Part shown: positions 1,788-42,442 of the stretch, piece by piece | How positions within the stretch are numbered: the first letter of the stretch is position 1 | How the letters are laid out: each line of letters begins with the position of its first letter | IMG/VR virus record: IMGVR_UViG_3300022868_000009 | Coordinates: 1 to 64,000 of that record | DNA: 64,000 nucleotides | Reading direction: 5' to 3' (one strand) | Notes under the pieces: generated by a model | Database searches by the model: none | The model's input: only the letters and a program-made list of their open reading frames with translations | Told to the model about the DNA's origin: nothing | Translations under genes and position numbers: made by a program

Positions 1788-3440
1788 TTATATATTAAAA
1801 TTAAATTTTAAATTACCACTATCATATATTCTATATATTTCTCTTTCTATCATTATTTCATGTTCACTCTTATTTGAATCATATCCTTCACTAACCAAAA
1901 TATCTTTTCTAAAATTAAATCTGTATCTTCTAATACCATCTATTACATAGTGATAGTTTGGTTTAGTTTCATCAACAAAATCAAATCCTAATTTATAATA
2001 TAAATTACCCTTACTCCATGATCTATCAGCATAACTTATTATCTCTTTGAATTTATAATTTTTAATAAAATATTTAAATAATTTACTAGCACCACCAACA
2101 ACACTGACATTTAATTTATTGCAAAATCTCAATAACTCATAAATACCATTTTTACTTTTACCACCCAATGGCTTTCTAGTTTTACCAAAAGTCATTAAAC
2201 TTACCAATTCATTTTCATAATATAAACCAACTTTAACAGAAGAACCAACAAATCCTTGAATATGATTTTCTTTTAAAAATTGTCTAGATTCATTAATATT
2301 AACTTCTTTCAATTCACATTTCCTAGCATATATAATATTAGATTTACTTAGCAAGTTTAATATTCTAGATTTTATTATATCTTGTTTATATTTCCAATCA
2401 TCTTCATAAATATGAATAAGTTGTATATTTTTTTCTAGACATTTAATAGTTTTTTGATAATGATAATCATTTGATTTATTTAATTCATTATGCCAATATA
2501 CACCATTAAATTCAAAAGCTAATTTTAATTCTGGTAAATAAATATCTAATTCATAAGGTTTTAAAATTGTTCTATCGGAAATTATAATTTTATTATCATA
2601 GTTTTCTTTAATAAAATCTTGCAATTGTAATTGCATACCAGAAATATTATAACTATTTACTGGATTGCATTTTGTACATAGAATAGTTTCATATTTTATC
2701 CTATTATAAAGTAATACTGAAGATATCTCAAAATCATGCCCTTTTTCACAATTGAAAATATAAATCCCATTCTTTTTTATTTCTTTAATACCAAATTCTT
2801 TATATTTTTCTAATATATTCTTATTTTTAGTAGTTTTTATTTTTTCTTTAACATTTTCTAATTGAGAAGTATGTTCAACACCATATTTTTCCAAATTATT
2901 TTTAATTGTATTTTCTTTAACTTTATCACTTTTAGAAGAAATATCTGTGCCATATTTTTCAAGACATGTTTCTCTACTCTTTCCTCTTATTTCTTCTGAT
3001 TGCATTAAATATTCAACACCGTATTTTTGTTTATTTGTCTTCTTTTGTATTTCTTGTATTTCTTTATTTTTTAAGTGATGTGTTACACCATATTTTTCAA
3101 GACATGTTTCTTTGATCTTTTCTTTAATTTCCTCTAATTGAAAAACATTGTCAACACCATATTTTTTTTGTAATGTATTTTTTGTTTTATGTTGTTTACA
3201 TTTACTACAGTAATAATTTGTTTCTCCATTCGAAGTTATCTTATTATAATCACTATAAACAATATCTTTTTCAATTTTACAATGAAAACATCTAACTTTA
3301 ATTTTTTGCCTAGATTGTAAAGGTAATTCTGAAATAAATATTTCAATTATATCACCAGATTCACAATCATAGCCTAATTCTTTGTACCTACCCACATTTT
3401 TATTTGATAATTTTATTTTAATTTTCCTGTTGACAATCAT
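1788..3440 (-). CDS. Hef-like putative homing endonuclease (Zn-ribbons, EKYGV repeats, DUF559/Vsr-like nuclease domain)
   Basis: CxxC motifs, repeated KYGV units, ELDIYLPELKLAFEFNGVYWH nuclease motif, C-terminal GGASKLFKYF...ISYADR domain; paralog of 8010-9752. Confidence 0.75.
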   Translation of the reverse strand: MIVNRKIKIKLSNKNVGRYKELGYDCESGDIIEIFISELPLQSRQKIKVRCFHCKIEKDIVYSDYNKITSNGETNYYCSKCKQHKTKNTLQKKYGVDNVFQLEEIKEKIKETCLEKYGVTHHLKNKEIQEIQKKTNKQKYGVEYLMQSEEIRGKSRETCLEKYGTDISSKSDKVKENTIKNNLEKYGVEHTSQLENVKEKIKTTKNKNILEKYKEFGIKEIKKNGIYIFNCEKGHDFEISSVLLYNRIKYETILCTKCNPVNSYNISGMQLQLQDFIKENYDNKIIISDRTILKPYELDIYLPELKLAFEFNGVYWHNELNKSNDYHYQKTIKCLEKNIQLIHIYEDDWKYKQDIIKSRILNLLSKSNIIYARKCELKEVNINESRQFLKENHIQGFVGSSVKVGLYYENELVSLMTFGKTRKPLGGKSKNGIYELLRFCNKLNVSVVGGASKLFKYFIKNYKFKEIISYADRSWSKGNLYYKLGFDFVDETKPNYHYVIDGIRRYRFNFRKDILVSEGYDSNKSEHEIMIEREIYRIYDSGNLKFNFNI

Positions 3441-8009: not shown

Positions 8010-9752
8010 ATGTTTTTGACAAAAAAATTAGCAGTTACAATAAACCCTTCAAATATCAAACATTTTAAAAAATATTTTGATAATATAGAAGTTAAAGATG
8101 AAATCGTTGTCAACATTGATCAATTAAATAAAGGTAGTCAGTTCATAATTAATGTTCAATGTGATCAATGTGGTCTTAAAAAAGAACTCAAATACAAAAA
8201 TTATTTAGGTTATGGTTACATTAATGGTGATTATTTATGTAGATCATGTAAATTAAAGAAAAATAATCAAGAAAAATATGGGGTTGACAACGTTTTTCAG
8301 CTTGAGGAGACAAAAGAAAAATCTAGAAAAACATGCATGAAAAAATATGGTGTTGAATACATTTCCCAATCAAATAAAACAAAAGATAAAATAAAACAAA
8401 TAAGCATAGAAAAATATGGTGTTAATCATTTTACACAAAATGATAATATTAAAAACAAACAAAAGCAAACAAATTTAGAAAAATATGGTGTAGAAAATCC
8501 ATCACAATCCATTGAAATTAAGAAAAAGAAAGAAAATAATTGGTTAATTAAAAATGATGAAGAGAAGGAATCAATTCTTAAAAAAAGAATTAAAACGAAT
8601 CAAATTAAATATAATTCTGATCATATTTTCACAAATGATTTTTTTAAAGAAAGAATAAAACAAACGAATTTAGAAAAATATGGTGTAGAAAACCCATCAT
8701 TAAACAAGAAAGTATCACAAAAAATAATATCTTCTTTAAAAGAAACACTTTTATCTAAACAATTTGAAAACATTGATAATTTAATAAATGTTCAAGGAGA
8801 TATTTTTTTAATTAAATGTGATGCATGTGGTGATGAATTTAAAATATTAAATAGTCTTTTTTATAAAAGAAGAGAATCAAACACATTAATTTGTACAAAT
8901 TGTAACCCTGTGTCTAAAAATGTATCTGGCAAAGAAATACAATTGTTGAATTTTATTAAAGACAATTACAATGGGACAATTATTGAAAACAGCAAAAAAA
9001 TAATATCACCACTAGAATTAGATATTTATCTTCCAGATTTAAATTTAGCATTTGAATTCAATGGTATCTATTGGCATTGTGAATTATACAAAGATAATAA
9101 CTATCATTCAAACAAGACTAAAATGTGCAATAATAAAAATATAAATCTTTTTCACATCTTTGAAGATGATTGGGTTTATAAACAAGATATAGTAAAATCT
9201 ATGATTATTAACAAAATAAATAGAACAACAAATAGAATATATGCACGAAAAACAACATTAAAAATAATAACAAATAATACATTAATTAAAGAATTTTTAA
9301 ATAGTAATCATATACAAGGTTATGTTGGTTCTTTTATTAAACTGGGATTATTTTATAATGATGATATTGTAAGTTTAATGACATTTAAAAATGTTAAAGA
9401 TGGTTATGAATTAAACAGGTTTTGTAATAAATTAAACACAAATGTAATTGGTGGTGCAAGTAAATTATTTAAATATTTTACAAAAAATTACTCATTTGAT
9501 AAGATAATATCATTCTCGAATAATGATTACTCAGAAGGAAATCTATATAAAACACTAAATTTTAGATTAGATAAAAAAATAAAACCGGATTATTCTTACA
9601 TTAAGAATGATAAAAGGGAACATAAATTTAATTTCAGGAAGAAAAAATTATCTCAAAATTTCAACATTTTAAATAAAACAGAACATGAAATATGTTTTGA
9701 AAATAATATTTATAGAATATATGACAGCGGCAAATTAAAATGGGTTTATTAA
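8010..9752 (+). CDS. Hef-like putative homing endonuclease
   Basis: Same architecture as 1788-3440 (EKYGV repeats, ELDIYLPDLNLAFEFNGIYWH, GGASKLFKYF); lies between the portal and protease genes on the opposite strand. Confidence 0.75.
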   Translation: MFLTKKLAVTINPSNIKHFKKYFDNIEVKDEIVVNIDQLNKGSQFIINVQCDQCGLKKELKYKNYLGYGYINGDYLCRSCKLKKNNQEKYGVDNVFQLEETKEKSRKTCMKKYGVEYISQSNKTKDKIKQISIEKYGVNHFTQNDNIKNKQKQTNLEKYGVENPSQSIEIKKKKENNWLIKNDEEKESILKKRIKTNQIKYNSDHIFTNDFFKERIKQTNLEKYGVENPSLNKKVSQKIISSLKETLLSKQFENIDNLINVQGDIFLIKCDACGDEFKILNSLFYKRRESNTLICTNCNPVSKNVSGKEIQLLNFIKDNYNGTIIENSKKIISPLELDIYLPDLNLAFEFNGIYWHCELYKDNNYHSNKTKMCNNKNINLFHIFEDDWVYKQDIVKSMIINKINRTTNRIYARKTTLKIITNNTLIKEFLNSNHIQGYVGSFIKLGLFYNDDIVSLMTFKNVKDGYELNRFCNKLNTNVIGGASKLFKYFTKNYSFDKIISFSNNDYSEGNLYKTLNFRLDKKIKPDYSYIKNDKREHKFNFRKKKLSQNFNILNKTEHEICFENNIYRIYDSGKLKWVY

Positions 9753-34553: not shown

Positions 34554-35232
34554 TTAATGTAAAAGTTCAATCTTACCCTTAATTATATTTTTATAACTCG
34601 ATTTACTATTAGTAATATGATCAACAATTATACCAGTTTTTAAATTATAAGTCCTTCTTCTATTTGACCTAGATCTTAAACCTATTTGTTCATTTCTACC
34701 ATTAGAATAAGACTCATTATATTCTTTATTAAATTTATCTTGTAATCTTTTCTTTAATTCTTTCCACGCACCAGATTCATTTTTATGTTGATTTCTACCA
34801 TCAACTCTTACTTGAATATTAGTAGGGATATGTTTTAAAATAACACAACTCATAGTTCTATTTCTATGTTGACCGCCCGGTCCAGAACCCATAGTATATA
34901 TTACTTCTACATCATTTTTATCAATATTAACTGAAATATCTTGTTTTTCATCTAAAACTGCAACAGAAACTGTTGATGTGTGCATTCTACCTTTTGATTC
35001 TGTTGGTGGTACACGTTGCCATTTATGATTACCTATTTCATTTGAGAAGAATTCTTTTACACCATCACCGCTAAAGACATAAATCAACTAAACCTTCTCT
35101 TTCATTAAGAGAAATTAGTTTAAATCCCTTTAACTTTAATGTTTTTAAGTAAATGTTTTTCATATCTTGTACTAGAAGTTTAGCATCCTCGCCACCTTCT
35201 TGATCTCTGATTTCTATAATAATTTTTTCCAT
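34554..35232 (-). CDS. prfA: Class I peptide chain release factor, RF1-type (PxT), lacking domain 1; two frames joined by a +1 frameshift at CTT TAG C (35076-35070); about 225 aa
   Basis: Frame 0 from ATG 35232: MEKIIIEIRDQEGGEDAKLLVQDMKNIY...LVDLCL*; +1 frame: SGDG...QRVPPTESKGRMHTS...GSGPGGQHRN...RRRTYN...DH. Together they match RF1 domains 2-4 continuously. Confidence 0.85.
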
Positions 35233-35247
35233 AACTTTGTTTTATTT

Positions 35248-35637
35248 TTATAATTCTGCTTTTTCAAAAAATTTCTGCATAGTTAAATATGCAAAAGAAT
35301 GTGCGTCTAATAAAGTATATTGTTTCCAACAAAAAAGTACAGATAATATAAATAATGCACCACTTATTATTGTAAATAATACAGGTAATTTAATTAGACA
35401 GATTAATGTAAGAATTAACAAAGCTATAGAAATATGCTTGCTATGTTTGAATCGGTAAAAATATTTAATAATGTTTTTAACATTGTGTTTAATTTGTATT
35501 TGTTTTAGTACTTTTAATGGAACTGATTTTTTATCATCCATTGTCATTTTTTGATAACCATCATAAGTTATATGTTCATATTCATTATCTACATGACAAT
35601 CTTTGTTTAATAAATCTTCAATTATAATTTTTTCCAT
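35248..35637 (-). CDS. Hypothetical membrane protein
   Basis: 129-aa ORF with two hydrophobic segments. Confidence 0.65.
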   Translation of the reverse strand: MEKIIIEDLLNKDCHVDNEYEHITYDGYQKMTMDDKKSVPLKVLKQIQIKHNVKNIIKYFYRFKHSKHISIALLILTLICLIKLPVLFTIISGALFILSVLFCWKQYTLLDAHSFAYLTMQKFFEKAEL

Positions 35638-35672
35638 AATATTAATATACGAAAATTCTTCTAAGAAAAAAA

Positions 35673-35921: not shown

Positions 35922-35981
35922 TATAATAATTATATTTTCTTCTATATATTAAAATACATATTGATAAATTTTATAATTATG

Positions 35982-36054
35982 TAACGCAGATCAGAATCGA
36001 ACTGACAGCCTTTGGGATATGATTCCAATGCTCTACCTATTGAGCTACTGCGTT
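35982..36054 (-). tRNA. tRNA-Met/Ile2 (CAT)
   Basis: Cloverleaf AACGCAG / GCTC-GAGC D stem / TTGGA-ATCATAT-CCCAA / GTCAG TTCGATT CTGAT. Confidence 0.75.
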
Positions 36055-36385
36055 ATTTATTTTTAATTCTATCTAATTTAATCTTTCGATCAATTCTTAT
36101 AATTTTCTTTTTAACTTCTTCATCTTTAAAATTTGGATGTAAATATAAATTACACATAACATGGAAAACATCTGGATTTATATCACCATTTTCATCTAAA
36201 CATGGTTTTAATATATCCATCATTATATATGTTCTAATAGATGTATAATTATTTTGAAATTCATAACGTTTACAAATAAAATCTATATAACTATCAACAT
36301 CAACAGGTATTATTTTATTCTCAAATTCGTCAATTAAAACATCAATTATATATTCATCATTAAAACCATTACTATCATCCGTCAT
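36053..36385 (-). CDS. Hypothetical protein (RKIKLDRI C-terminus)
   Basis: 110-aa ORF. Confidence 0.6.
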   Translation of the reverse strand: MTDDSNGFNDEYIIDVLIDEFENKIIPVDVDSYIDFICKRYEFQNNYTSIRTYIMMDILKPCLDENGDINPDVFHVMCNLYLHPNFKDEEVKKKIIRIDRKIKLDRIKNK

Positions 36386-36567
36386 CCTTTACTCTACTAA
36401 TTTAACTTTTCTTTGATACTGGTATTAAAATTCTACTATTTTCCATATAACTTATATTTCAAATAATATAATATGTTTAAAAATTTTGTATTTAAAAAGA
36501 ACCGTATCAATAATAAATTAATACGGTTTCAGTAGAGGGTAACTAATATAATTGGTAAGATAAAAAA

Positions 36568-36759
36568 CTATTCTTGTTCCTTTTTAGCTTTAAGGTTACC
36601 CTTAGTTTTTCCTTTTACTTCTTTTTCTTTCTTGTCTGGTCTAACTAATTCTTTCCAGATGTTTTTAGGACAATAATTATATCCGTTTGCTAACTTTTCA
36701 TAAACTTCCTTTTCTTTTACTCTAATTGGAAGGTCGTCTCCGAGTCTCATTGTTTTCAT
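36568..36759 (-). CDS. Small basic hypothetical protein
   Basis: 63-aa ORF. Confidence 0.55.
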   Translation of the reverse strand: MKTMRLGDDLPIRVKEKEVYEKLANGYNYCPKNIWKELVRPDKKEKEVKGKTKGNLKAKKEQE

Positions 36760-36767
36760 AAGCTAAT

Positions 36768-37277
36768 TTAATTAATTTTTATAATATTTGATTTTTCTAT
36801 TTTTATTGATTTTTCTATTTTTAATTTTTCTATTGGTTTTTCTTTTTTAATATTATTAAAATCTATAACCTTCAATGTTATAGTATCTGTTTTTTGTTTA
36901 AATGTAAATTCATGCTCACCTTTACCATAATGGTTTATTTTTACAAATAAATTAAAAACTGTATTTTCATTAATTTGTCTAGATTCATTTACTTTAAAAA
37001 TATATTTAATTTGTTTACCATCAAACTCATATTCAGCATAAAAATCTTTGTTTTTAGAATCAAGATAAACTACAGGTTTAATTTCACCATCATATGCAAC
37101 AAATTCATTTATATCTGCAAATGGACCAACAATTGCAAAACCAACAATAAATATAACTATTGATGCAAATACACACCATGCTTTCGTTAAAGATTTTTTA
37201 GAAAATATTGATAATAAAATAAATATCATTAATAATCCAGGACTAATTATCCATGCAAGTGTTAATAGTAAACTCAT
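36768..37277 (-). CDS. Hypothetical membrane protein
   Basis: 169-aa ORF with two N-terminal TM-like helices. Confidence 0.65.
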   Translation of the reverse strand: MSLLLTLAWIISPGLLMIFILLSIFSKKSLTKAWCVFASIVIFIVGFAIVGPFADINEFVAYDGEIKPVVYLDSKNKDFYAEYEFDGKQIKYIFKVNESRQINENTVFNLFVKINHYGKGEHEFTFKQKTDTITLKVIDFNNIKKEKPIEKLKIEKSIKIEKSNIIKIN

Positions 37278-37354
37278 TTTTTATATTTTTTTAATTTGTA
37301 TAAATATACAAAAATTTCAACTTAAAAAAAATTTTCGATTCTAAATTTTAATTG

Positions 37355-37427
37355 TAGGTATAGATGGATTTGAACCACCGACTTCTACTGTATAAGAGTA
37401 GCACTCTGACCCCTGAGTTATATACCC
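37355..37427 (-). tRNA. tRNA-Ile (TAT)
   Basis: GGGTATA / ACTC-GAGT / CTACT-CTTATAC-AGTAG / GGTGG TTCAAAT CCATC; close paralog of tRNA-Ile(GAT) at 39044. Confidence 0.85.
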
Positions 37428-37804
37428 ATGTCTAATCGTTTAAAAATTTTCCTTTCAATTGTTTCTATCATATAATTAGAATAAAAAAACAAATCGTACA
37501 TATTCTTTACCTCTTTTACATTATAATAATCACTATATTCATATATTTGATAAGTGATGCCTGTACCTGTTTTATAGGATGATGTATAACATATATATTC
37601 TTTATTTTTGTATTTTTTATATCTTACACTATGCAACGTGTTTATTATATAACCATTTTTAATATTTTTATAAACACTTTTAACATTTTTAATATTTTTA
37701 AAATCAAACTCATTAAATATACGTTGAAAAGCATGCTTAGGACTTAAAACCTTATTTTTTTCAAAATAATGTTCAAAACCAATTTGATATTTGTTTTTTC
37801 TCAT
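37418..37804 (-). CDS. Hypothetical protein
   Basis: 128-aa ORF; its 3' end overlaps the tRNA 5' end by 10 nt. Confidence 0.5.
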   Translation of the reverse strand: MRKNKYQIGFEHYFEKNKVLSPKHAFQRIFNEFDFKNIKNVKSVYKNIKNGYIINTLHSVRYKKYKNKEYICYTSSYKTGTGITYQIYEYSDYYNVKEVKNMYDLFFYSNYMIETIERKIFKRLDMGI

Positions 37805-37842
37805 ATTATTTTTGTATGTTTACGACAAAGTTTTCAATACTT

Positions 37843-37924
37843 AATATCTGATTCGAACCTACGTTGGGGCGTTTACCTCATCAGATTAACAGTCTGACAC
37901 CTTCGACCACTCGGACACAGATCA
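37843..37924 (-). tRNA. Degenerate tRNA (GTT anticodon, long variable arm, 3' T-stem strand missing)
   Basis: CCGAGTGGTCGAAGG D arm, TCAGA-CTGTTAA-TCTGA, GTAGG TTCGAAT then directly CAGAT with no CCTAC. Confidence 0.55.
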
Positions 37925-37932
37925 ATTTATTA

Positions 37933-38646
37933 TTACACAATTTCCGATTTTATTGCATTTGGTGGAATATTATCATAAGTATAATATGCTTCAGAATCTT
38001 CGTTAAACTTTGGATCTTTATGTAATTTAATATTATTAATCATCACTTTCATATCTATTTCTAGAATAATATATTCTTCCTTAGAATGAAATTCTTTTTC
38101 TTCTAAGTAATTTTTAGATATTTTTTCATTTCCAAATAAATAAATTCTTTCTGGATGTTGTTCAATAACGTTTTTAGTTTTAGGAACTATACCTTGTTTT
38201 TTAATTTTATCTAAATTTTTTTTATTTGTAACATGATATAATTTTTCTGGTACACCAACTTCAGAATCAAATCTTTTATTTAAATAAACTATGAAATCTT
38301 CATCTTTTTTCCAAACATGTGTTGAAATACTTGTTTTTTTACCATCCATATACTGGTTTGAAATATTATAACCTAAATTATTTACCAAAATCAATAAATC
38401 AGAATAAAATTCTTTTAATCTTTCTCCATAAAAATTAAGTTCAATTCTATCTTTAAGAATATATAATTTGACACTACCTTTTACTTTATGTTTTTTAAGC
38501 AAATCGTCGATTTTTTGAACTGATATATCATAATCAATACTTTTAATAAGACCCTCTTTAATTAAATTATAATTGAAAGACTCTAACATTTTATTATTAA
38601 AGTCATGATGATATCCACAAAATTCAAAATATTTTTTCATATTCAT
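37933..38646 (-). CDS. ADP-ribosyltransferase-fold protein (Tpt1/KptA-like H-motif) with CTS-like start
   Basis: KLYHVT...I.KQGI.PK...RIYLF...ILEI....YTYDNIPPNAI; paralog of 54608-55393. Confidence 0.6.
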   Translation of the reverse strand: MNMKKYFEFCGYHHDFNNKMLESFNYNLIKEGLIKSIDYDISVQKIDDLLKKHKVKGSVKLYILKDRIELNFYGERLKEFYSDLLILVNNLGYNISNQYMDGKKTSISTHVWKKDEDFIVYLNKRFDSEVGVPEKLYHVTNKKNLDKIKKQGIVPKTKNVIEQHPERIYLFGNEKISKNYLEEKEFHSKEEYIILEIDMKVMINNIKLHKDPKFNEDSEAYYTYDNIPPNAIKSEIV

Positions 38647-38677
38647 TATATATTAAATTCATTTTTTTGTTTATTTG

Positions 38678-38750
38678 AGGGGAAACTAGGACTCGAACCT
38701 AGGACACCTTGATTAACAATCAAGTACTCTACCAACTGAGTTATATCCCC
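38678..38750 (-). tRNA. tRNA-Asn (GTT)
   Basis: GGGGATA / ACTC-GAGT / CTTGA-TTGTTAA-TCAAG / CTAGG TTCGAGT CCTAG. Confidence 0.85.
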
Positions 38751-38831
38751 TGGTATAGGGCTAAAACCACTACCCTATCTTTGAAAGTTTACAAATCTAC
38801 CTGTGGTTAGGTCATAGAACTGCTCCTACAG

Positions 38832-38903
38832 TAGTCCGTAGGGGAATCGAACCCCTCTCTCTGGGCTGAAAACCCAACGTCCTGCGCAATAGACGAACGG
38901 ACC
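38832..38903 (-). tRNA. tRNA-Glu (TTC)
   Basis: GGTCCGT / TTGGG-TTTTCAG-CCCAG / AGGGG TTCGATT CCCCT. Confidence 0.85.
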
Positions 38904-38915
38904 ATAAATTACATG

Positions 38916-38997
38916 TAGCGGGTCTAGGAGTCGAACCTAGTATCTCGTGGGTTATGAGCCCAGAATGATTTATAATTATCCATTTCACTCCCCCGCA
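38916..38997 (-). tRNA. tRNA-fMet (CAT), initiator-like, enlarged D loop
   Basis: 1:72 T-T mismatch, GGG/CCC at the base of the anticodon stem, CTCATAA loop, CTAGG TTCGACT CCTAG. Confidence 0.75.
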
Positions 38998-39043
38998 ATA
39001 TAATTTCAATCTTTAAAAATTTATCAATATGTCAAAGAACTTG

Positions 39044-39117
39044 TGGGTATAGATGGATTCGAACCATCGACCTCTACCGTATCAGAGTAGCACTCTAACC
39101 AACTGAGCTATACACCC
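39044..39117 (-). tRNA. tRNA-Ile (GAT)
   Basis: GGGTGTA / GCTC-GAGT / CTACT-CTGATAC-GGTAG / GATGG TTCGAAT CCATC. Confidence 0.9.
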
Positions 39118-39118
39118 G

Positions 39119-39836
39119 TTATAATTTCAACCATTTTCTTATTGAATTATCACTAACACCATATTTTTTACCTACCTGTACATAATTACTTTCTTGAATT
39201 TCTTTCAATAAAATTTCTTTATTAGGTCTTTCTACTTTTCTGCTTTTTTCATGATAACATTCTACACATTGTTTTGATTGTCTTCATTTCATTACCACAT
39301 TCACAATAGTATTTTTTCTTTTCTTTTTTTTGATATTTTTGATATTTCTCTTTTTTTAAATCAGATTTATTAGATTTTGTTTTACTTTTACCACAATATG
39401 TGCTTGTCTGGCTATGACAATTTGGACATAATAATCTAAGATTTTCTAATCTATTATCTAAGTTATCACCATTTATATGGTCCAAATGTAAAGATATAGA
39501 TTTTCTTTTCCATTCATTTATTCCACATTCATCACATTTATATTCTAAAATATCTTCTTCAATAAGACGTTTTTTCAAAGAACCATTATTAGTATAAGTT
39601 GAATTTTCAACTAATATTTCATCCAACGAATAAGTTTTTGAAAAATTCTTAAAATTTTCACCTGTATTCCAACCTTGTCCTGTAAAATGTGATTTATCAA
39701 TATTATATAATTTAACATATTTTTTAATTGTTTTATAATTTCCACCTACTGGTCTTATGTCTAATTTTCTACAAACATCAGCAATTGAAAATGATTCTTT
39801 TACTATTTTCTCTAAATTATCTTTTTCATATTTCAT
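39119..39836 (-). pseudogene. HNH homing endonuclease, frameshifted before its C-terminal Zn/HTH domain
   Basis: LHLDHINGDNLDNRLENLRLLCPNCH in ORF 39249-39836; a shifted frame continues SKQCVECYHEKSRKVERP...KYGVSDNSIRKWLKL* to 39119, matching the C-termini of the other two HNH genes. Confidence 0.75.
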
Positions 39837-39931
39837 ATTAATATTTATTTTATATTATATATTAAAACTTAAAAGCTATATTTTTTAATGTAAATATACG
39901 TTTGATATATTTATATTAACTAAAAATAGTG

Positions 39932-40016
39932 TACCTGGAATGGGACTCGAACCCATACGACCATAAAGATCAATAGATTTTAAGTCTATCTCGGCTACCA
40001 ATTACGACACCCAGGC
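39932..40016 (-). tRNA. tRNA-Leu (TAA)
   Basis: GCCTGGG / ATAGA-CTTAAAA-TCTAT / long variable arm / ATGGG TTCGAGT CCCAT. Confidence 0.9.
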
Positions 40017-40235
40017 ATTTGTGTCTTATTTTATCATTATTAACGAATCCTTTTATAATTCATTCTTTCTTTTTTACCTTTTCTTTCTCTAATCAAATCG
40101 TGTTCAATTTCAATAGCGAATTTTAAGTATAACCACATATCTGAATTAGGTCTTTGTTTACTCATACCTAATCTATATTTAATTATTTTATTTCTAGTTT
40201 TTTTATTCATTTCTTTCCTTTCTTATATTTATTTG

Positions 40236-40315
40236 TACCTCTGGAGAGACTCGAACTCTCACACCTTTCGGCACTGGTGCCTAAAACCAGCGTGTCTACA
40301 TTCCACCACAGAGGC
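40236..40315 (-). tRNA. tRNA-Leu (TAG)
   Basis: GCCTCTG / CTGGT-TTTAGGC-ACCAG / GCCGAAAGGT variable arm / GAGAG TTCGAGT CTCTC. Confidence 0.9.
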
Positions 40316-40324
40316 ATATTTAAT

Positions 40325-40354
40325 AAAAAAGCCAGTTCTTTATTTTGAACTGGC
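40325..40354 (-). terminator. Intrinsic terminator of putative attenuator 1
   Basis: GCCAGTTC-AAAATAAA-GAACTGGC-TTTTTT, ending 10 nt upstream of tRNA-Leu(TAG). Confidence 0.75.
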
Positions 40355-40376
40355 TCTATAATTTAACAATAGTATA

Positions 40377-40442
40377 TTAGAGCCAGTCCCAGATTTCCTC
40401 TAGTAATAAATTAATAATCATATTTATATTTATATTCAACAT
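40377..40442 (-). CDS. Putative leader peptide 1 (MLNININMIINLLLEEIWDWL)
   Basis: 21-aa ORF with an A-rich upstream region; its last codons form the 5' strand of a 10-bp antiterminator. Confidence 0.6.
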   Translation of the reverse strand: MLNININMIINLLLEEIWDWL

Positions 40443-40474
40443 TTTTGTACTTTTTATTTTATTTTATTTTTTAG

Positions 40475-40546
40475 AGGCTCCGACTGAATTCGAATCAGTG
40501 TATCTAGTTTTGCAGACTAGTGCCTTAACCACTCGGCCACGGAGCC
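40475..40546 (-). tRNA. tRNA-Cys (GCA)
   Basis: GGCTCCG / CTAGT-CTGCAAA-ACTAG / U73 discriminator. Confidence 0.9.
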
Positions 40547-40557
40547 ATTATTTTTTG

Positions 40558-40652
40558 TGGGAGCCGAGGGACTCGAACCCCCCTACCGCAAAGTCCATTA
40601 CGACAATTTGTTGACGCGGATCGGTTTTACAGACCGATGCCGTTAGACTCCC
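40558..40652 (-). tRNA. Atypical tRNA-Tyr (GTA): no D arm, about 38-nt variable region
   Basis: Acceptor GGGAGTC/GGCTCCC plus A73; 8-nt linker TAACGGCA; TCGGT-CTGTAAA-ACCGA; GGGGG TTCGAGT CCCTC. Confidence 0.65.
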
Positions 40653-40658
40653 AAACTT

Positions 40659-41354
40659 TTACGACTTATTTTTTATTGTATTTTCATAAGTTTTTAACCA
40701 TTTTCTTATAGCATTATCACTAACACCATATTTTCTTCCAGTAGCAGAATAACCTACTCTTTTTATTTCTATTTTTAATTTTTCATAAGAAGGTCTTTCA
40801 ACTTTCCTGTTGTTTTTTGCTGAACATTTCACACACATTTTTGAATTTTTATGTATTTCATTACCACATTCACAATAATTTTTTTCTTTTTTCTTTTTTC
40901 TATTTTTACCAGCATGTGTATCTAATGTTGCATTACAATTAGGACATACAATCCTCAAATTTTCTATTTTATTATCATCATAAACACCATTCTTGTGATC
41001 CAAAATTAAACTCATTTTTTTACCATTCCATATTTCATCTTGTCCACATATTTCACATTTTCTTTCTTTTAAACCTTCATCATATAATCTTTCTTTTAAA
41101 TGTGTTCTACTAAATGTAGAATTTTCAACTAATATTTTTTCTAATGGTGTCTTATTTTTAGTTGATAAATATTTAATTTTATCATAACATTTAGTAAAAT
41201 GTGTTATATCCAAATCATACAACTCAATATATTTTTTCAATGTTTTAGGGTTACCACCAGCATTTCTTATTCCTAATTTTTCTAAACACTCTTTTTGTGT
41301 TTTAGATGTCTTAACTATTTCTTCAAGATTTTCTTTTGTCCATTTTAATTTCAT
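40659..41354 (-). CDS. HNH homing endonuclease with C-terminal Zn-ribbon/HTH
   Basis: LILDHKNGVYDDNKIENLRIVCPNCN, YCECG, KYGVSDNAIRKW. Confidence 0.85.
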   Translation of the reverse strand: MKLKWTKENLEEIVKTSKTQKECLEKLGIRNAGGNPKTLKKYIELYDLDITHFTKCYDKIKYLSTKNKTPLEKILVENSTFSRTHLKERLYDEGLKERKCEICGQDEIWNGKKMSLILDHKNGVYDDNKIENLRIVCPNCNATLDTHAGKNRKKKKEKNYCECGNEIHKNSKMCVKCSAKNNRKVERPSYEKLKIEIKRVGYSATGRKYGVSDNAIRKWLKTYENTIKNKS

Positions 41355-41414
41355 AAAAAAAAGTTTTCTTTTATATATTAAATCTCGAACCTCGTTTTTT
41401 CATTTTTTCATTTG

Positions 41415-41485
41415 TTGTCCCCAAAGGATTTAAACCCTTACCACAACCTTCAAAAGGTTATGTGCTATCATTACACCAGAGGACA
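41415..41485 (-). tRNA. tRNA-Gln (TTG)
   Basis: TGTCCTC / GTGT-GCAC / TAACC-TTTTGAA-GGTTG / AAGGG TTTAAAT CCTTT. Confidence 0.8.
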
Positions 41486-41512
41486 AAATATAATCTAAAA
41501 CTTATTTTCTAG

Positions 41513-41584
41513 CAGTCCATGGGAGATTCGAACTCCAACCTTTGCCGTGAAAAGCTGTAGTGCTACCATTACACCATGGGGCTA
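41513..41584 (-). tRNA. Degenerate tRNA (TTC loop, unpaired anticodon stem)
   Basis: GGTGTAATGGTAGCAC D arm and GGAG TTCGAAT CTCC T arm are present, but the anticodon and acceptor stems are mismatched. Confidence 0.5.
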
Positions 41585-41590
41585 ATTATT

Positions 41591-42286
41591 CTAAATCTTT
41601 TCGTATTGTTTTTTCCATTTCCTAATAGCATTATCACTAACACCATACTTTCTTCCTACACCACAATAACCTAATTCAACTATTTCTTTTATCAATTCTT
41701 TATATGTTGGTCTTTCTATTTTTCTCTGACTCTTAGATACACATTCTCTACATTTAATAGCAGATTTAGTAATCTCATTTCCACATTCACAATAATATTT
41801 CTTTTTCTCCGTAACGTAATTATATTTACTATTTCCAATATTCTTACCACCGTGTGTTTCTAAACCAGCATTACAATTTGGACAAACAATTCTAAGATTT
41901 TCTATTCTATTATCATTATTTACACCGTTTTTATGATCTAATATTAAACTGATTTTTACATCATTCCATTCTTCACCTTGATTACACAACTCACATTTTC
42001 TTTCTTTTAACCCTTCTTTGTATAATCTATCTTTTAAATTAGTTGTATAAGTATACGTCGAATTTTCTACTAATATTTCTTTTGTTTTTATTTTAGTAAA
42101 ATTACCACCATTACTATGAAACTTAAAATGTGTTATATCTAAATTATAAGTTTTAATATATTTTTTAATAGTTTGCCTATTTCCATAATATGGTTTTAAT
42201 CCTAAATTTCTAGCAACATCTGATAAATTACCAGATTCAGAAACTATTTTACTAAAATACTCTTTTTCATATCTATTTGTTTTCAT
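41591..42286 (-). CDS. HNH homing endonuclease with C-terminal Zn-ribbon/HTH
   Basis: LILDHKNGVNNDNRIENLRIVCPNCN, YYCECG, KYGVSDNAIRKW. Confidence 0.85.
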   Translation of the reverse strand: MKTNRYEKEYFSKIVSESGNLSDVARNLGLKPYYGNRQTIKKYIKTYNLDITHFKFHSNGGNFTKIKTKEILVENSTYTYTTNLKDRLYKEGLKERKCELCNQGEEWNDVKISLILDHKNGVNNDNRIENLRIVCPNCNAGLETHGGKNIGNSKYNYVTEKKKYYCECGNEITKSAIKCRECVSKSQRKIERPTYKELIKEIVELGYCGVGRKYGVSDNAIRKWKKQYEKI

Positions 42287-42365
42287 AAGATTTTATTTTT
42301 ATATATTAAAATCTTCGAACCCAAATTCAAATTAACCAACATTTCAATGAACCTTTATTTTCTTG

Positions 42366-42442
42366 CGGTCCCTACGGGATTCGAACCCGTCTGTTTTTCC
42401 TGAGTGACAGTCAGGTGGCCACGCCAAGCAACCCCAGAGACC
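42366..42442 (-). tRNA. tRNA-Asp (GTC)
   Basis: GGTCTCT / CCTGA-CTGTCAC-TCAGG / ACGGG TTCGAAT CCCGT / G73. Confidence 0.9.

Follow-up and report, generated by a model that had tools for sequence, protein, structure and literature searches.

The programmed frameshift in the gene for release factor RF2 has served for forty years as a textbook case of translational autoregulation, with RF1 as the stated exception. The window analyzed here, which has a GC content of 25.7% and spans bases 1-64000 of a 344,634-bp giant-phage contig from IMG/VR, bears on that exception: on its minus strand lies a gene with the sequence of an RF1-type release factor, and its reading frame is broken at CTT TAG C. Is this break a genuine recoding site, and could the gene respond to RF1 activity in the manner of the frameshifted RF2 gene, prfB? 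The features on which the answer depends are the following.

35074..35232, minus strand: release-factor ORF1, frame 0; 53 codons, encoding the first part of RF1 domain 2, with the EGGEDA tip of helix alpha-5
35232-35230, minus strand: ATG start codon of the release-factor gene
35068..35079, minus strand: shift site TGT CTT TAG CGG, common to 13 distinct sequences as TGY CTT TAG CGG
35076-35074, minus strand: putative P-site slippery codon, CTT
35073-35071, minus strand: putative A-site stop, TAG
35070, minus strand: +4 base at the shift site, C
35065..35067, minus strand: second frame-0 stop, TGA, two codons past the TAG
34554..35072, minus strand: ORF2, +1 frame; 172 codons plus TAA (34556-34554), covering the rest of domain 2 and domains 3 and 4
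35072-35070, minus strand: first +1-frame codon, AGC (Ser)
35001..35009, minus strand: PPT tripeptide, the RF1-type PxT 'anticodon', from sequence and alignment to E. coli RF1
34869..34877, minus strand: GGQ catalytic motif of domain 3, from sequence and alignment to E. coli RF1

From the ATG at 35232, frame 0 runs for 53 codons and closes with TTA TGT CTT TAG CGG TGA, and the +1 frame picks up the RF1 homology at the AGC at 35072. ORF2 contains SGDG, QRVPPTE, GGQ, and RRTYN, and the homology runs on into it gap-free from ORF1, for a conceptual product of 225 aa. Reading through the TAG would be a dead end because the frame-0 TGA at 35067-35065 lies two codons on; in every CTT-TAG relative, frame 0 is shut 1–11 codons past the TAG. 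The 12 nt before the window's CTT contain no SD-like sequence. A preliminary description of this DNA had claimed as much, namely a 53-codon frame 0, resumption of homology in the +1 frame, a shift at CTT TAG C as the productive route in place of readthrough, and a missing internal SD, and the coordinates, the translation, and matches to the RF1 model bear it out on each point. The 7-mer CTTTAGC occurs eight times in the window, counting two strands, so the motif by itself is unremarkable; what exceeds chance is that it falls on the very point where an RF1 homologue changes frame and that relatives conserve it. RNAalifold predicted zero pairs across ten shift-site sequences (-30 to +100 nt), and the window's own 131 nt around the site folded no better than shuffles (z = +1.15). 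A scan for promoters and terminators around the gene returned fewer sites than shuffles and no terminator.

The two pieces match the Pfam models PF03462 (PCRF) and PF00472 (RF-1), and they cover positions 105-148 and 164-333 of the 347-position RF1 model in the same order. ORF1 aligns to T. thermophilus RF1 residues 107-143 and ORF2 to E. coli RF1 residues 167-340. Residue-by-residue alignment to RF1 from both species recovers the decoding elements: the PxT tripeptide with a Gln three residues ahead of it and a His-Thr pair behind it, as well as the GG-x-x-A tip of alpha-5. The tip is held by piece 1, while piece 2 holds the Q-R-V-P-x-T-E...R-x-H-T-S loop, GGQ, and RRTYN. Piece 2 scores 157 bits against RF1, 92 against RF2, 48 against PrfH, and 20.8 against ArfB; piece 1 scores 23 bits against RF1, and each piece stays far below the NCBIfam prfA cut-off of 400. 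By the definition of the prfA equivalog (full length, domain 1, and a score above cut-off), the window gene therefore falls outside it. Domain 1 is truly absent, because a TAA closes the frame 12 nt ahead of the ATG and the preceding ORF does not resemble release factors. The predicted structure of an uninterrupted natural homologue (pLDDT 93.5) superimposes on ribosome-bound RF1 with a TMq of 0.87–0.89, compared with 0.83 for RF2 and 0.63 for PrfH.

Judged by its sequence, the window gene is thus a class-I release factor of the RF1 type consisting of domains 2–4, with predicted UAA/UAG specificity, and its product would release peptides at UAA and UAG. This agrees with the earlier assignment to the RF1 type, given the decoding residues shared with E. 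coli and T. thermophilus RF1 and a homologue that folds onto ribosome-bound RF1, and with the earlier claim that domain 1 is missing, given a match that begins at model position 105 and the TAA before the ATG. The same description had likened the protein to PrfH, and here the likeness extends to the missing domain 1 and fails on the remaining marks of PrfH membership. An identity as PrfH was rejected on the PPT in a full-length loop, the GG tip, and a TIGR03072 (PrfH) score of 47.7, where the cut-off is 166.65; ten ORFs scanned from about 2.4 kb downstream to 7 kb upstream contained no RtcB domain. An ArfB or ICT1-type identity was rejected as well, since domains 2 and 4 are present and the ArfB score of 20.8 is below its cut-off of 100.

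A single extra T in the three-T run at the CTT/TAG boundary, introduced in sequencing or assembly, would look exactly like this site, and a pseudogene would be conceivable in a family in which one relative carries two nonsense codons and may be decaying. Against both, assemblies made by other pipelines (Logan SRR7528472 and ENA ERZ27315652) match the window at 100% identity over the whole gene, shift site included, which answers the concern over an assembly indel raised in the preliminary description, and an identical 177-aa C-terminal ORF has been recorded from eight contigs. The closest relative, at 73% identity and from another JGI sample, reads TTC TGT CTT TAG CGG. In a search covering 5.8 billion proteins, with the site read from the +1-frame signature ...(V/A/I)FSG, CTT TAG C occupied the window's column in all eight of the closest protein clusters (60–74% identity) and in 33 of the 120 best clusters, so that the motif is kept in all close homologues, the point that the preliminary description had put up for checking, and in dozens of diverged homologues from different samples. 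Around the TGY CTT TAG CGG common to 13 distinct DNA sequences, flanking codons diverge, including at synonymous positions. Both halves of the gene are under purifying selection, with dN/dS against relatives of 0.08–0.34 for ORF1 and 0.07–0.33 for ORF2. Hand-curated complete huge-phage genomes have the same recoding features, among them the family's other recoding types. An artefact or a pseudogene is, in our estimate, the least probable of all the explanations considered here, with hardly any chance of being right.

The stop signal itself appears to be constrained. AGC accounts for 29 of the window's 1103 Ser codons, yet it is invariant at the shift site in every member, and TAG C is invariant throughout the CTT-TAG group; the next base after the window's four genuine TAG stops is A or T, and in none is it C. 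Both the weak +4 C, which never varies, and the use of a rare codon, AGC, suggest that selection acts on this signal.

The window gene belongs to a large family of short RF1-like genes, with at least 1,024 homologues found and represented here by 113 distinct genes with both ends from viral, metagenome, and genome collections, which are located in phage tRNA islands and on Myxococcota chromosomes. All 113 begin at the RF1 domain-2 boundary, 106 contain an internal stop, and 71 require a +1 shift. The P-site codon is CTT in each of these 71 and the stop is followed by C in 55; the stop is TGA in 47, TAG in 23, and TAA in 1. The residue after the shift tracks the stop, with Ser or Arg after TAG, Asp or Glu after TGA, and Asn after TAA. 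The shift sites fall in two columns. Site 2, the window's column just before SG(D)G, is found in low-GC phages, with TAG in 14 of 15 cases and no SD in 14 of 15; its conserved residue is Ser or Thr before Gly, and three clusters with CTT TGA C there have Asp. Site 1, 16 codons upstream of site 2, is found in GC-rich phages and Myxococcota chromosomes, has an SD in 51 of 56 cases, and reads GGAGG-N3-CTT TGA C, which is the prfB arrangement. Its carriers (loci L037-L080, e.g., L042:2930-2960; L083; L106-L134) include a minority with CTT TAG and one with CTT TAA. In the model of the uninterrupted homologue, a beta-strand ends at site 2, and site 1 falls in a loop. Myxococcota copies with site 1 occur in Nannocystis exedens, N. 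punicea, Archangium gephyra, and Pyxidicoccus fallax as RF1-type (PPT) genes; no tRNAs adjoin them, and their neighbors were uninformative.

Many low-GC relatives have an in-frame TGA at the two site columns instead (L005, L007, L008, L010-L012, L014, L015, L017, L018, L024-L036, L081, L082, L182, and L183), and a few have an in-frame TAG. The TGA relatives carry one or two such codons at the site columns and none in the 172-codon C-terminal part. Some databases translate this TGA as Trp under code 4; at L182, neighboring genes contain no in-frame TGA, two of them end in TAG, and the conserved Trp is TGG (two relatives checked at the DNA level). A reading of UGA as Cys, for which the evidence was solely positional (TGA aligns with TGY), was set aside, gene callers giving Trp (code 4). 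No tRNA(UCA) was found in the low-GC (21–42% GC) branch of the family. Coding-density inference of the genetic code from 6.5-kb loci was uninformative for GC-rich DNA and dominated by the factor gene in low-GC loci, and 20-kb loci brought small gains only. In a tree of the C-terminal pieces, the bootstrap of which fell short of full convergence, the CTT-TAG state is interleaved with the in-frame-TGA state, which takes a minimum of four changes on branches with good support. Few members have a frame that is truly uninterrupted (L087, L046, and three clusters). The relative with two nonsense codons (L009:2842-3520, 60% identical) is interrupted in frame twice, by a TAG near site 2 and by a TAA at the otherwise invariant Gln of EQIG; either the gene is in decay or TAR is read as Gln there, and its 19.5-kb flank gave no sign of recoding.

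The universality of PPT in this set is partly by construction, because the peptide patterns used in the locus search include the PPTE loop. Several members depart from it: in a 485-kb curated phage (L083; LR745208.1), the VPPTE segment is gone and the SD-CTT-TGA shift is kept, while PPN stands for PPT in several Myxococcota and metagenome-assembled-genome copies. Decoding-loop variants are found at L083, L106, L109, L111, L117, L121, L130, and L131, and His replaces the conserved Gln at L006, L028, and L038. Since the decoding loop varies, codon specificity may differ within the family.

In 17 low-GC viral loci (L187-L221, e.g., L191:12357-12430; L095:5512-5585; L102:4404-4476), the RF1-like gene is followed 1.4–4 kb downstream by an amber-suppressor tRNA, tRNA(CUA), usually with a tRNA-Cys(GCA) about 0.7 kb beyond it and often with a tmRNA about 2.5 kb upstream. 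About half of the CTT-TAG relatives have a downstream amber suppressor, the members near tRNA(CUA) being L004, L006, L016, L038, L095, and L096. Alignment of this tRNA with phage tRNA-Gln did not reveal the amino acid carried. No suppressor tRNA is present among the ten tRNAs of the window, which covers 64 kb of the 344-kb genome, or in the DNA at hand for the closest relatives (L002 and L085). Other unusual tRNAs occur in the family's surroundings. One with an 8-nt anticodon loop, CCUA, adjoins the factor gene at L196:8337-8413; a tRNA-Leu-like gene with an 8-nt loop (UAAG) lies 2.6 kb from a CTT-TGA shift gene at L241:7353-7430, and in its close relative L042 that position is taken by an unusual tRNA-Leu(AAG). 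At L220:5958-6027, a tRNA with a 6-nt anticodon loop stands where other loci have tRNA-Cys.

In the window, the release-factor gene is the last member of a tRNA array, an association that recurs in relatives.

35981..42442, minus strand: array of 10 tRNA genes with HNH endonuclease ORFs scattered among them, adjoining the release-factor gene on its upstream side, same strand
40235..40315, minus strand: tRNA-Leu(UAG), a possible decoder of the slippery CUU

An Rfam scan returned only the ten tRNAs, and Pfam searches of the neighboring ORFs returned HNH endonucleases and a weak Tpt1 match, with no partner gene among them. The window also codes for a major head protein, portal, prohead protease, homing endonucleases, and an NAD-dependent ligase. 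All real ORFs of the window, including head, portal, and protease, are intact under code 11 with no in-frame TAG or TGA; judged from these 64 kb, the phage appears to use the standard code. Its 77 ORFs end in TAA (55), TGA (18), and TAG (4); TAG is a genuine stop here and a rare one, as remarked on in the preliminary description. SD-like 4-mers precede 6 of the 77 genes, against a background of 6.6%, and leaders are A-rich. Window genes without SD fit an SD-independent host such as Bacteroidota, and Bacteroidetes are the predicted hosts of related huge phages, both in keeping with the host type suggested earlier. Among the Leu codons of the window, CTT ranks second in use, and the phage tRNA-Leu(UAG) could possibly decode the slippery CUU. 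The array also contains a tRNA-Ile(UAU) at 37354-37427 alongside a tRNA-Ile(GAU), which fits the extreme AT-rich codon usage of the phage.

We place a probability of about 0.6 on the reading that this is one phage RF1-type gene, gated by a +1 frameshift and subject to UAG/RF1 negative feedback as in prfB. A programmed +1 frameshift at CUU-UAG is very likely in its own right, because the site has the prfB architecture: CUU followed by U, a stop read by a single factor, C at +4, and a dead-end frame 0. Peptidyl-tRNA-Leu would sit on CUU in the P site with a poor stop signal, UAG-C, waiting in the A site; the tRNA would then re-pair with UUU, and reading would resume at AGC (Ser). UAG is recognized by RF1 alone, so the shift would compete with termination by RF1. 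An amber-suppressor tRNA would also compete with the shift, the suppressed product dying at the next stop. Output of the factor would be expected to rise when UAG is decoded slowly and to fall when RF1 activity, host and phage together, is high, and if the product is an active RF1, negative feedback would follow. The sequence data establish the identity of the gene, the layout of its frames, its conservation, and the purifying selection on both halves, and from these we infer the occurrence, the efficiency, and the RF1 dependence of the shift; feedback that senses RF1 is plausible on present sequence evidence. The missing SD has precedent, as an SD-less CUU UGA site in Flavobacterium johnsoniae frameshifts as well as the native one, at about 7% (PMC10798248), and SD loss occurs in some prfB genes (PMC10798248).

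The reading given in the preliminary description is supported in part, and the mirror image of RF2 autoregulation that it put forward is plausible. The window gene combines a UAG gating stop with RF1-type sequence, as that proposal has it, whereas its strict version sits poorly with a family that is mostly TGA-gated: most relatives with the same loop use UGA, and the greater frequency of TGA over TAG gates despite an RF1-type loop does not fit self-sensing. The TAG at site 2 may moreover be forced by coding, since only T-AGC keeps the conserved Ser/Thr. These patterns could relate to a +1 frameshift that is real and in which the internal stop is a general gate, its identity set by the +1 residue and by composition; the factor would then be kept low, or tied to any slowdown of termination. 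Consistent with this are the 47 TGA, 23 TAG, and 1 TAA among shift sites in proteins that share the RF1-type loop, the strict dependence of the post-shift residue on the stop, the Ser/Thr at site 2, and the Asp in the rare site-2 members with CTT TGA C. However, a UAG in the A site is cleared by RF1 alone, so that RF1 dependence would follow from established termination biochemistry whatever set the codon, and the invariant weak +4 C and rare AGC suggest that the stop signal is itself selected. We regard a general gate as unlikely, though it is a serious competitor to the RF1-sensing reading.

Alternatively, the factor may work with an amber suppressor as a genetic-code switch, enforcing UAG termination early in infection only and being shut off once suppression is active. 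The tRNA(CUA) downstream of 17 low-GC relatives, CTT-TAG members included, is consistent with such a role, and a phage 'code change module' that combines a suppressor tRNA with a release factor has been described (Borges et al. preprint). In these relatives, the suppressor would drive the ribosome into the frame-0 stop, switching the factor off, and the site may report the balance of suppressor and release factor rather than the RF1 level alone. The window and its closest relatives fit this less well: neither the 64 kb nor the DNA at hand for L002 and L085 contains a suppressor, the window's real genes have no in-frame TAG or TGA, and TAG is a genuine stop there. For the window gene, a code switch is accordingly an improbable explanation. 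Still less probable, to the point of being very hard to credit, is translation of the two ORFs separately, as a split protein or by internal initiation, or decoding of a quadruplet by a tRNA with an expanded anticodon loop. A +1-frame TTG does lie just upstream of the shift site, at 35087, and tRNAs with 8-nt loops adjoin the gene at L196 and L241. However, the internal start codon is not conserved (it is absent in L003, for example), and a C-terminal product alone would be without helix alpha-5, the reader of the first stop-codon base; the window has no expanded-loop tRNA, and the loops at L196 and L241 match neither CUUU nor UAGC.

Returning to the reading of a frameshift-gated, RF1-sensing gene, a broader version can be framed tentatively and with some doubt on our part: a family-wide 'stop-codon gate', in which nearly all of the factors would be made only when decoding of one internal stop fails or is reprogrammed. 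Lineages would repeatedly pass back and forth among three forms of it: UGA or UAG in frame, a CUU-UGA shift stimulated by an SD, and a CUU-UAG shift without one. CUU-UAG would then be the first natural RF1-type autoregulatory frameshift, and a gate beside an amber-suppressor tRNA could act as a controller, balancing suppression against termination during a phage-driven code change.

Comparison with known systems places the window gene closest in design to prfB, from which it differs in detail. In both, CUU is followed by U, the stop is one that a single release factor reads and has a C behind it, frame 0 is a very short dead end, and the site sits in a class-I release-factor gene itself. The window site differs in using UAG in an RF1-type gene at codon 53-54 in domain 2, as opposed to UGA at codon 26 in domain 1 for prfB, in being without an internal SD, and in being carried by a phage. 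A 2025 survey recorded TAG in 0 of 8,164 prfB motifs and a programmed frameshift in prfA in none of 12,753 bacterial genomes (PMC12421855). With bacterial prfA, the window gene shares the fold of domains 2–4, the decoding residues, and GGQ, but it lacks domain 1, has a PPT tripeptide, is interrupted by a shift, and scores 157 bits against the cut-off of 400. The RF1 and RF2 genes of Jade, Lak, and Agate phages (Borges et al.) are similar in belonging to large phages and in lying beside tRNA genes, and the relatives that adjoin an amber suppressor recall the 'code change module' of the same authors. In those modules, RF1 accompanies recoded TGA and RF2 recoded TAG, and the release-factor genes were reported in standard code (Borges et al.). 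Here, in contrast, the RF1-type gene is itself recoded, the phage apparently keeps to the standard code, and in relatives the partner is a TAG suppressor, the reverse of that pairing.

PrfH, from the rtcB2-prfH operon, likewise has no domain 1 and keeps GGQ. Its marks are an SXY motif within a loop shortened by three residues, a GP at the tip of alpha-5, and an RtcB gene upstream (PMC1586002), all of which are absent from the window gene; a reviewer of the PrfH paper described the RF1 family as being without the frameshift (PMC1586002). In giant amoeba viruses, a release-factor gene also needs stop-codon recoding, by readthrough plus frameshifting, for its own synthesis (PMC5009743), although that factor is eukaryotic-type, unrelated in sequence, and from another host domain. 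A 2016 recoding review gave the UAG/RF1 counterpart of a stop-gated release-factor gene as unknown (PMC5009743), and papers on phage release factors, together with a tRNA-array paper that includes an 'RF-1', leave recoding of such genes unmentioned. Our literature search found no published report of a frameshifted RF1-type gene. On its sequence features, the CUU-UAG-gated gene would therefore be an RF1 counterpart of the RF2 frameshift, for which we found no earlier description.

A conserved CUU-UAG-C in an RF1-type gene would supply the missing case and open the question of why RF2 and not RF1 to direct testing. It would also tie control of release-factor dosage to phage tRNA islands and amber-suppressor tRNAs, a tie that bears on the timing of expression in phages with reassigned stop codons. 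Because genes of this family are annotated as truncated 'PCRF domain' ORFs or translated straight through with code 4, phage release factors are undercounted and miscalled. A search of the annotated phage collection for a cultured phage with an annotated copy yielded unannotated huge-phage assemblies and bacterial contaminants only.

Several further observations concern the surroundings of the gene. Two paralogous large homing/HNH endonuclease genes (phrog_3339; 1788-3440 and 8010-9752) flank the block of head-protein, protease, and portal genes, and three further HNH ORFs lie among the tRNA genes (39249-42286). A 23-nt direct repeat with 91% identity (35212-35234 and 35617-35639) covers two start codons, that of the release-factor gene and that of the membrane-protein ORF before it (35248-35637), and both proteins begin with MEKIIIE.
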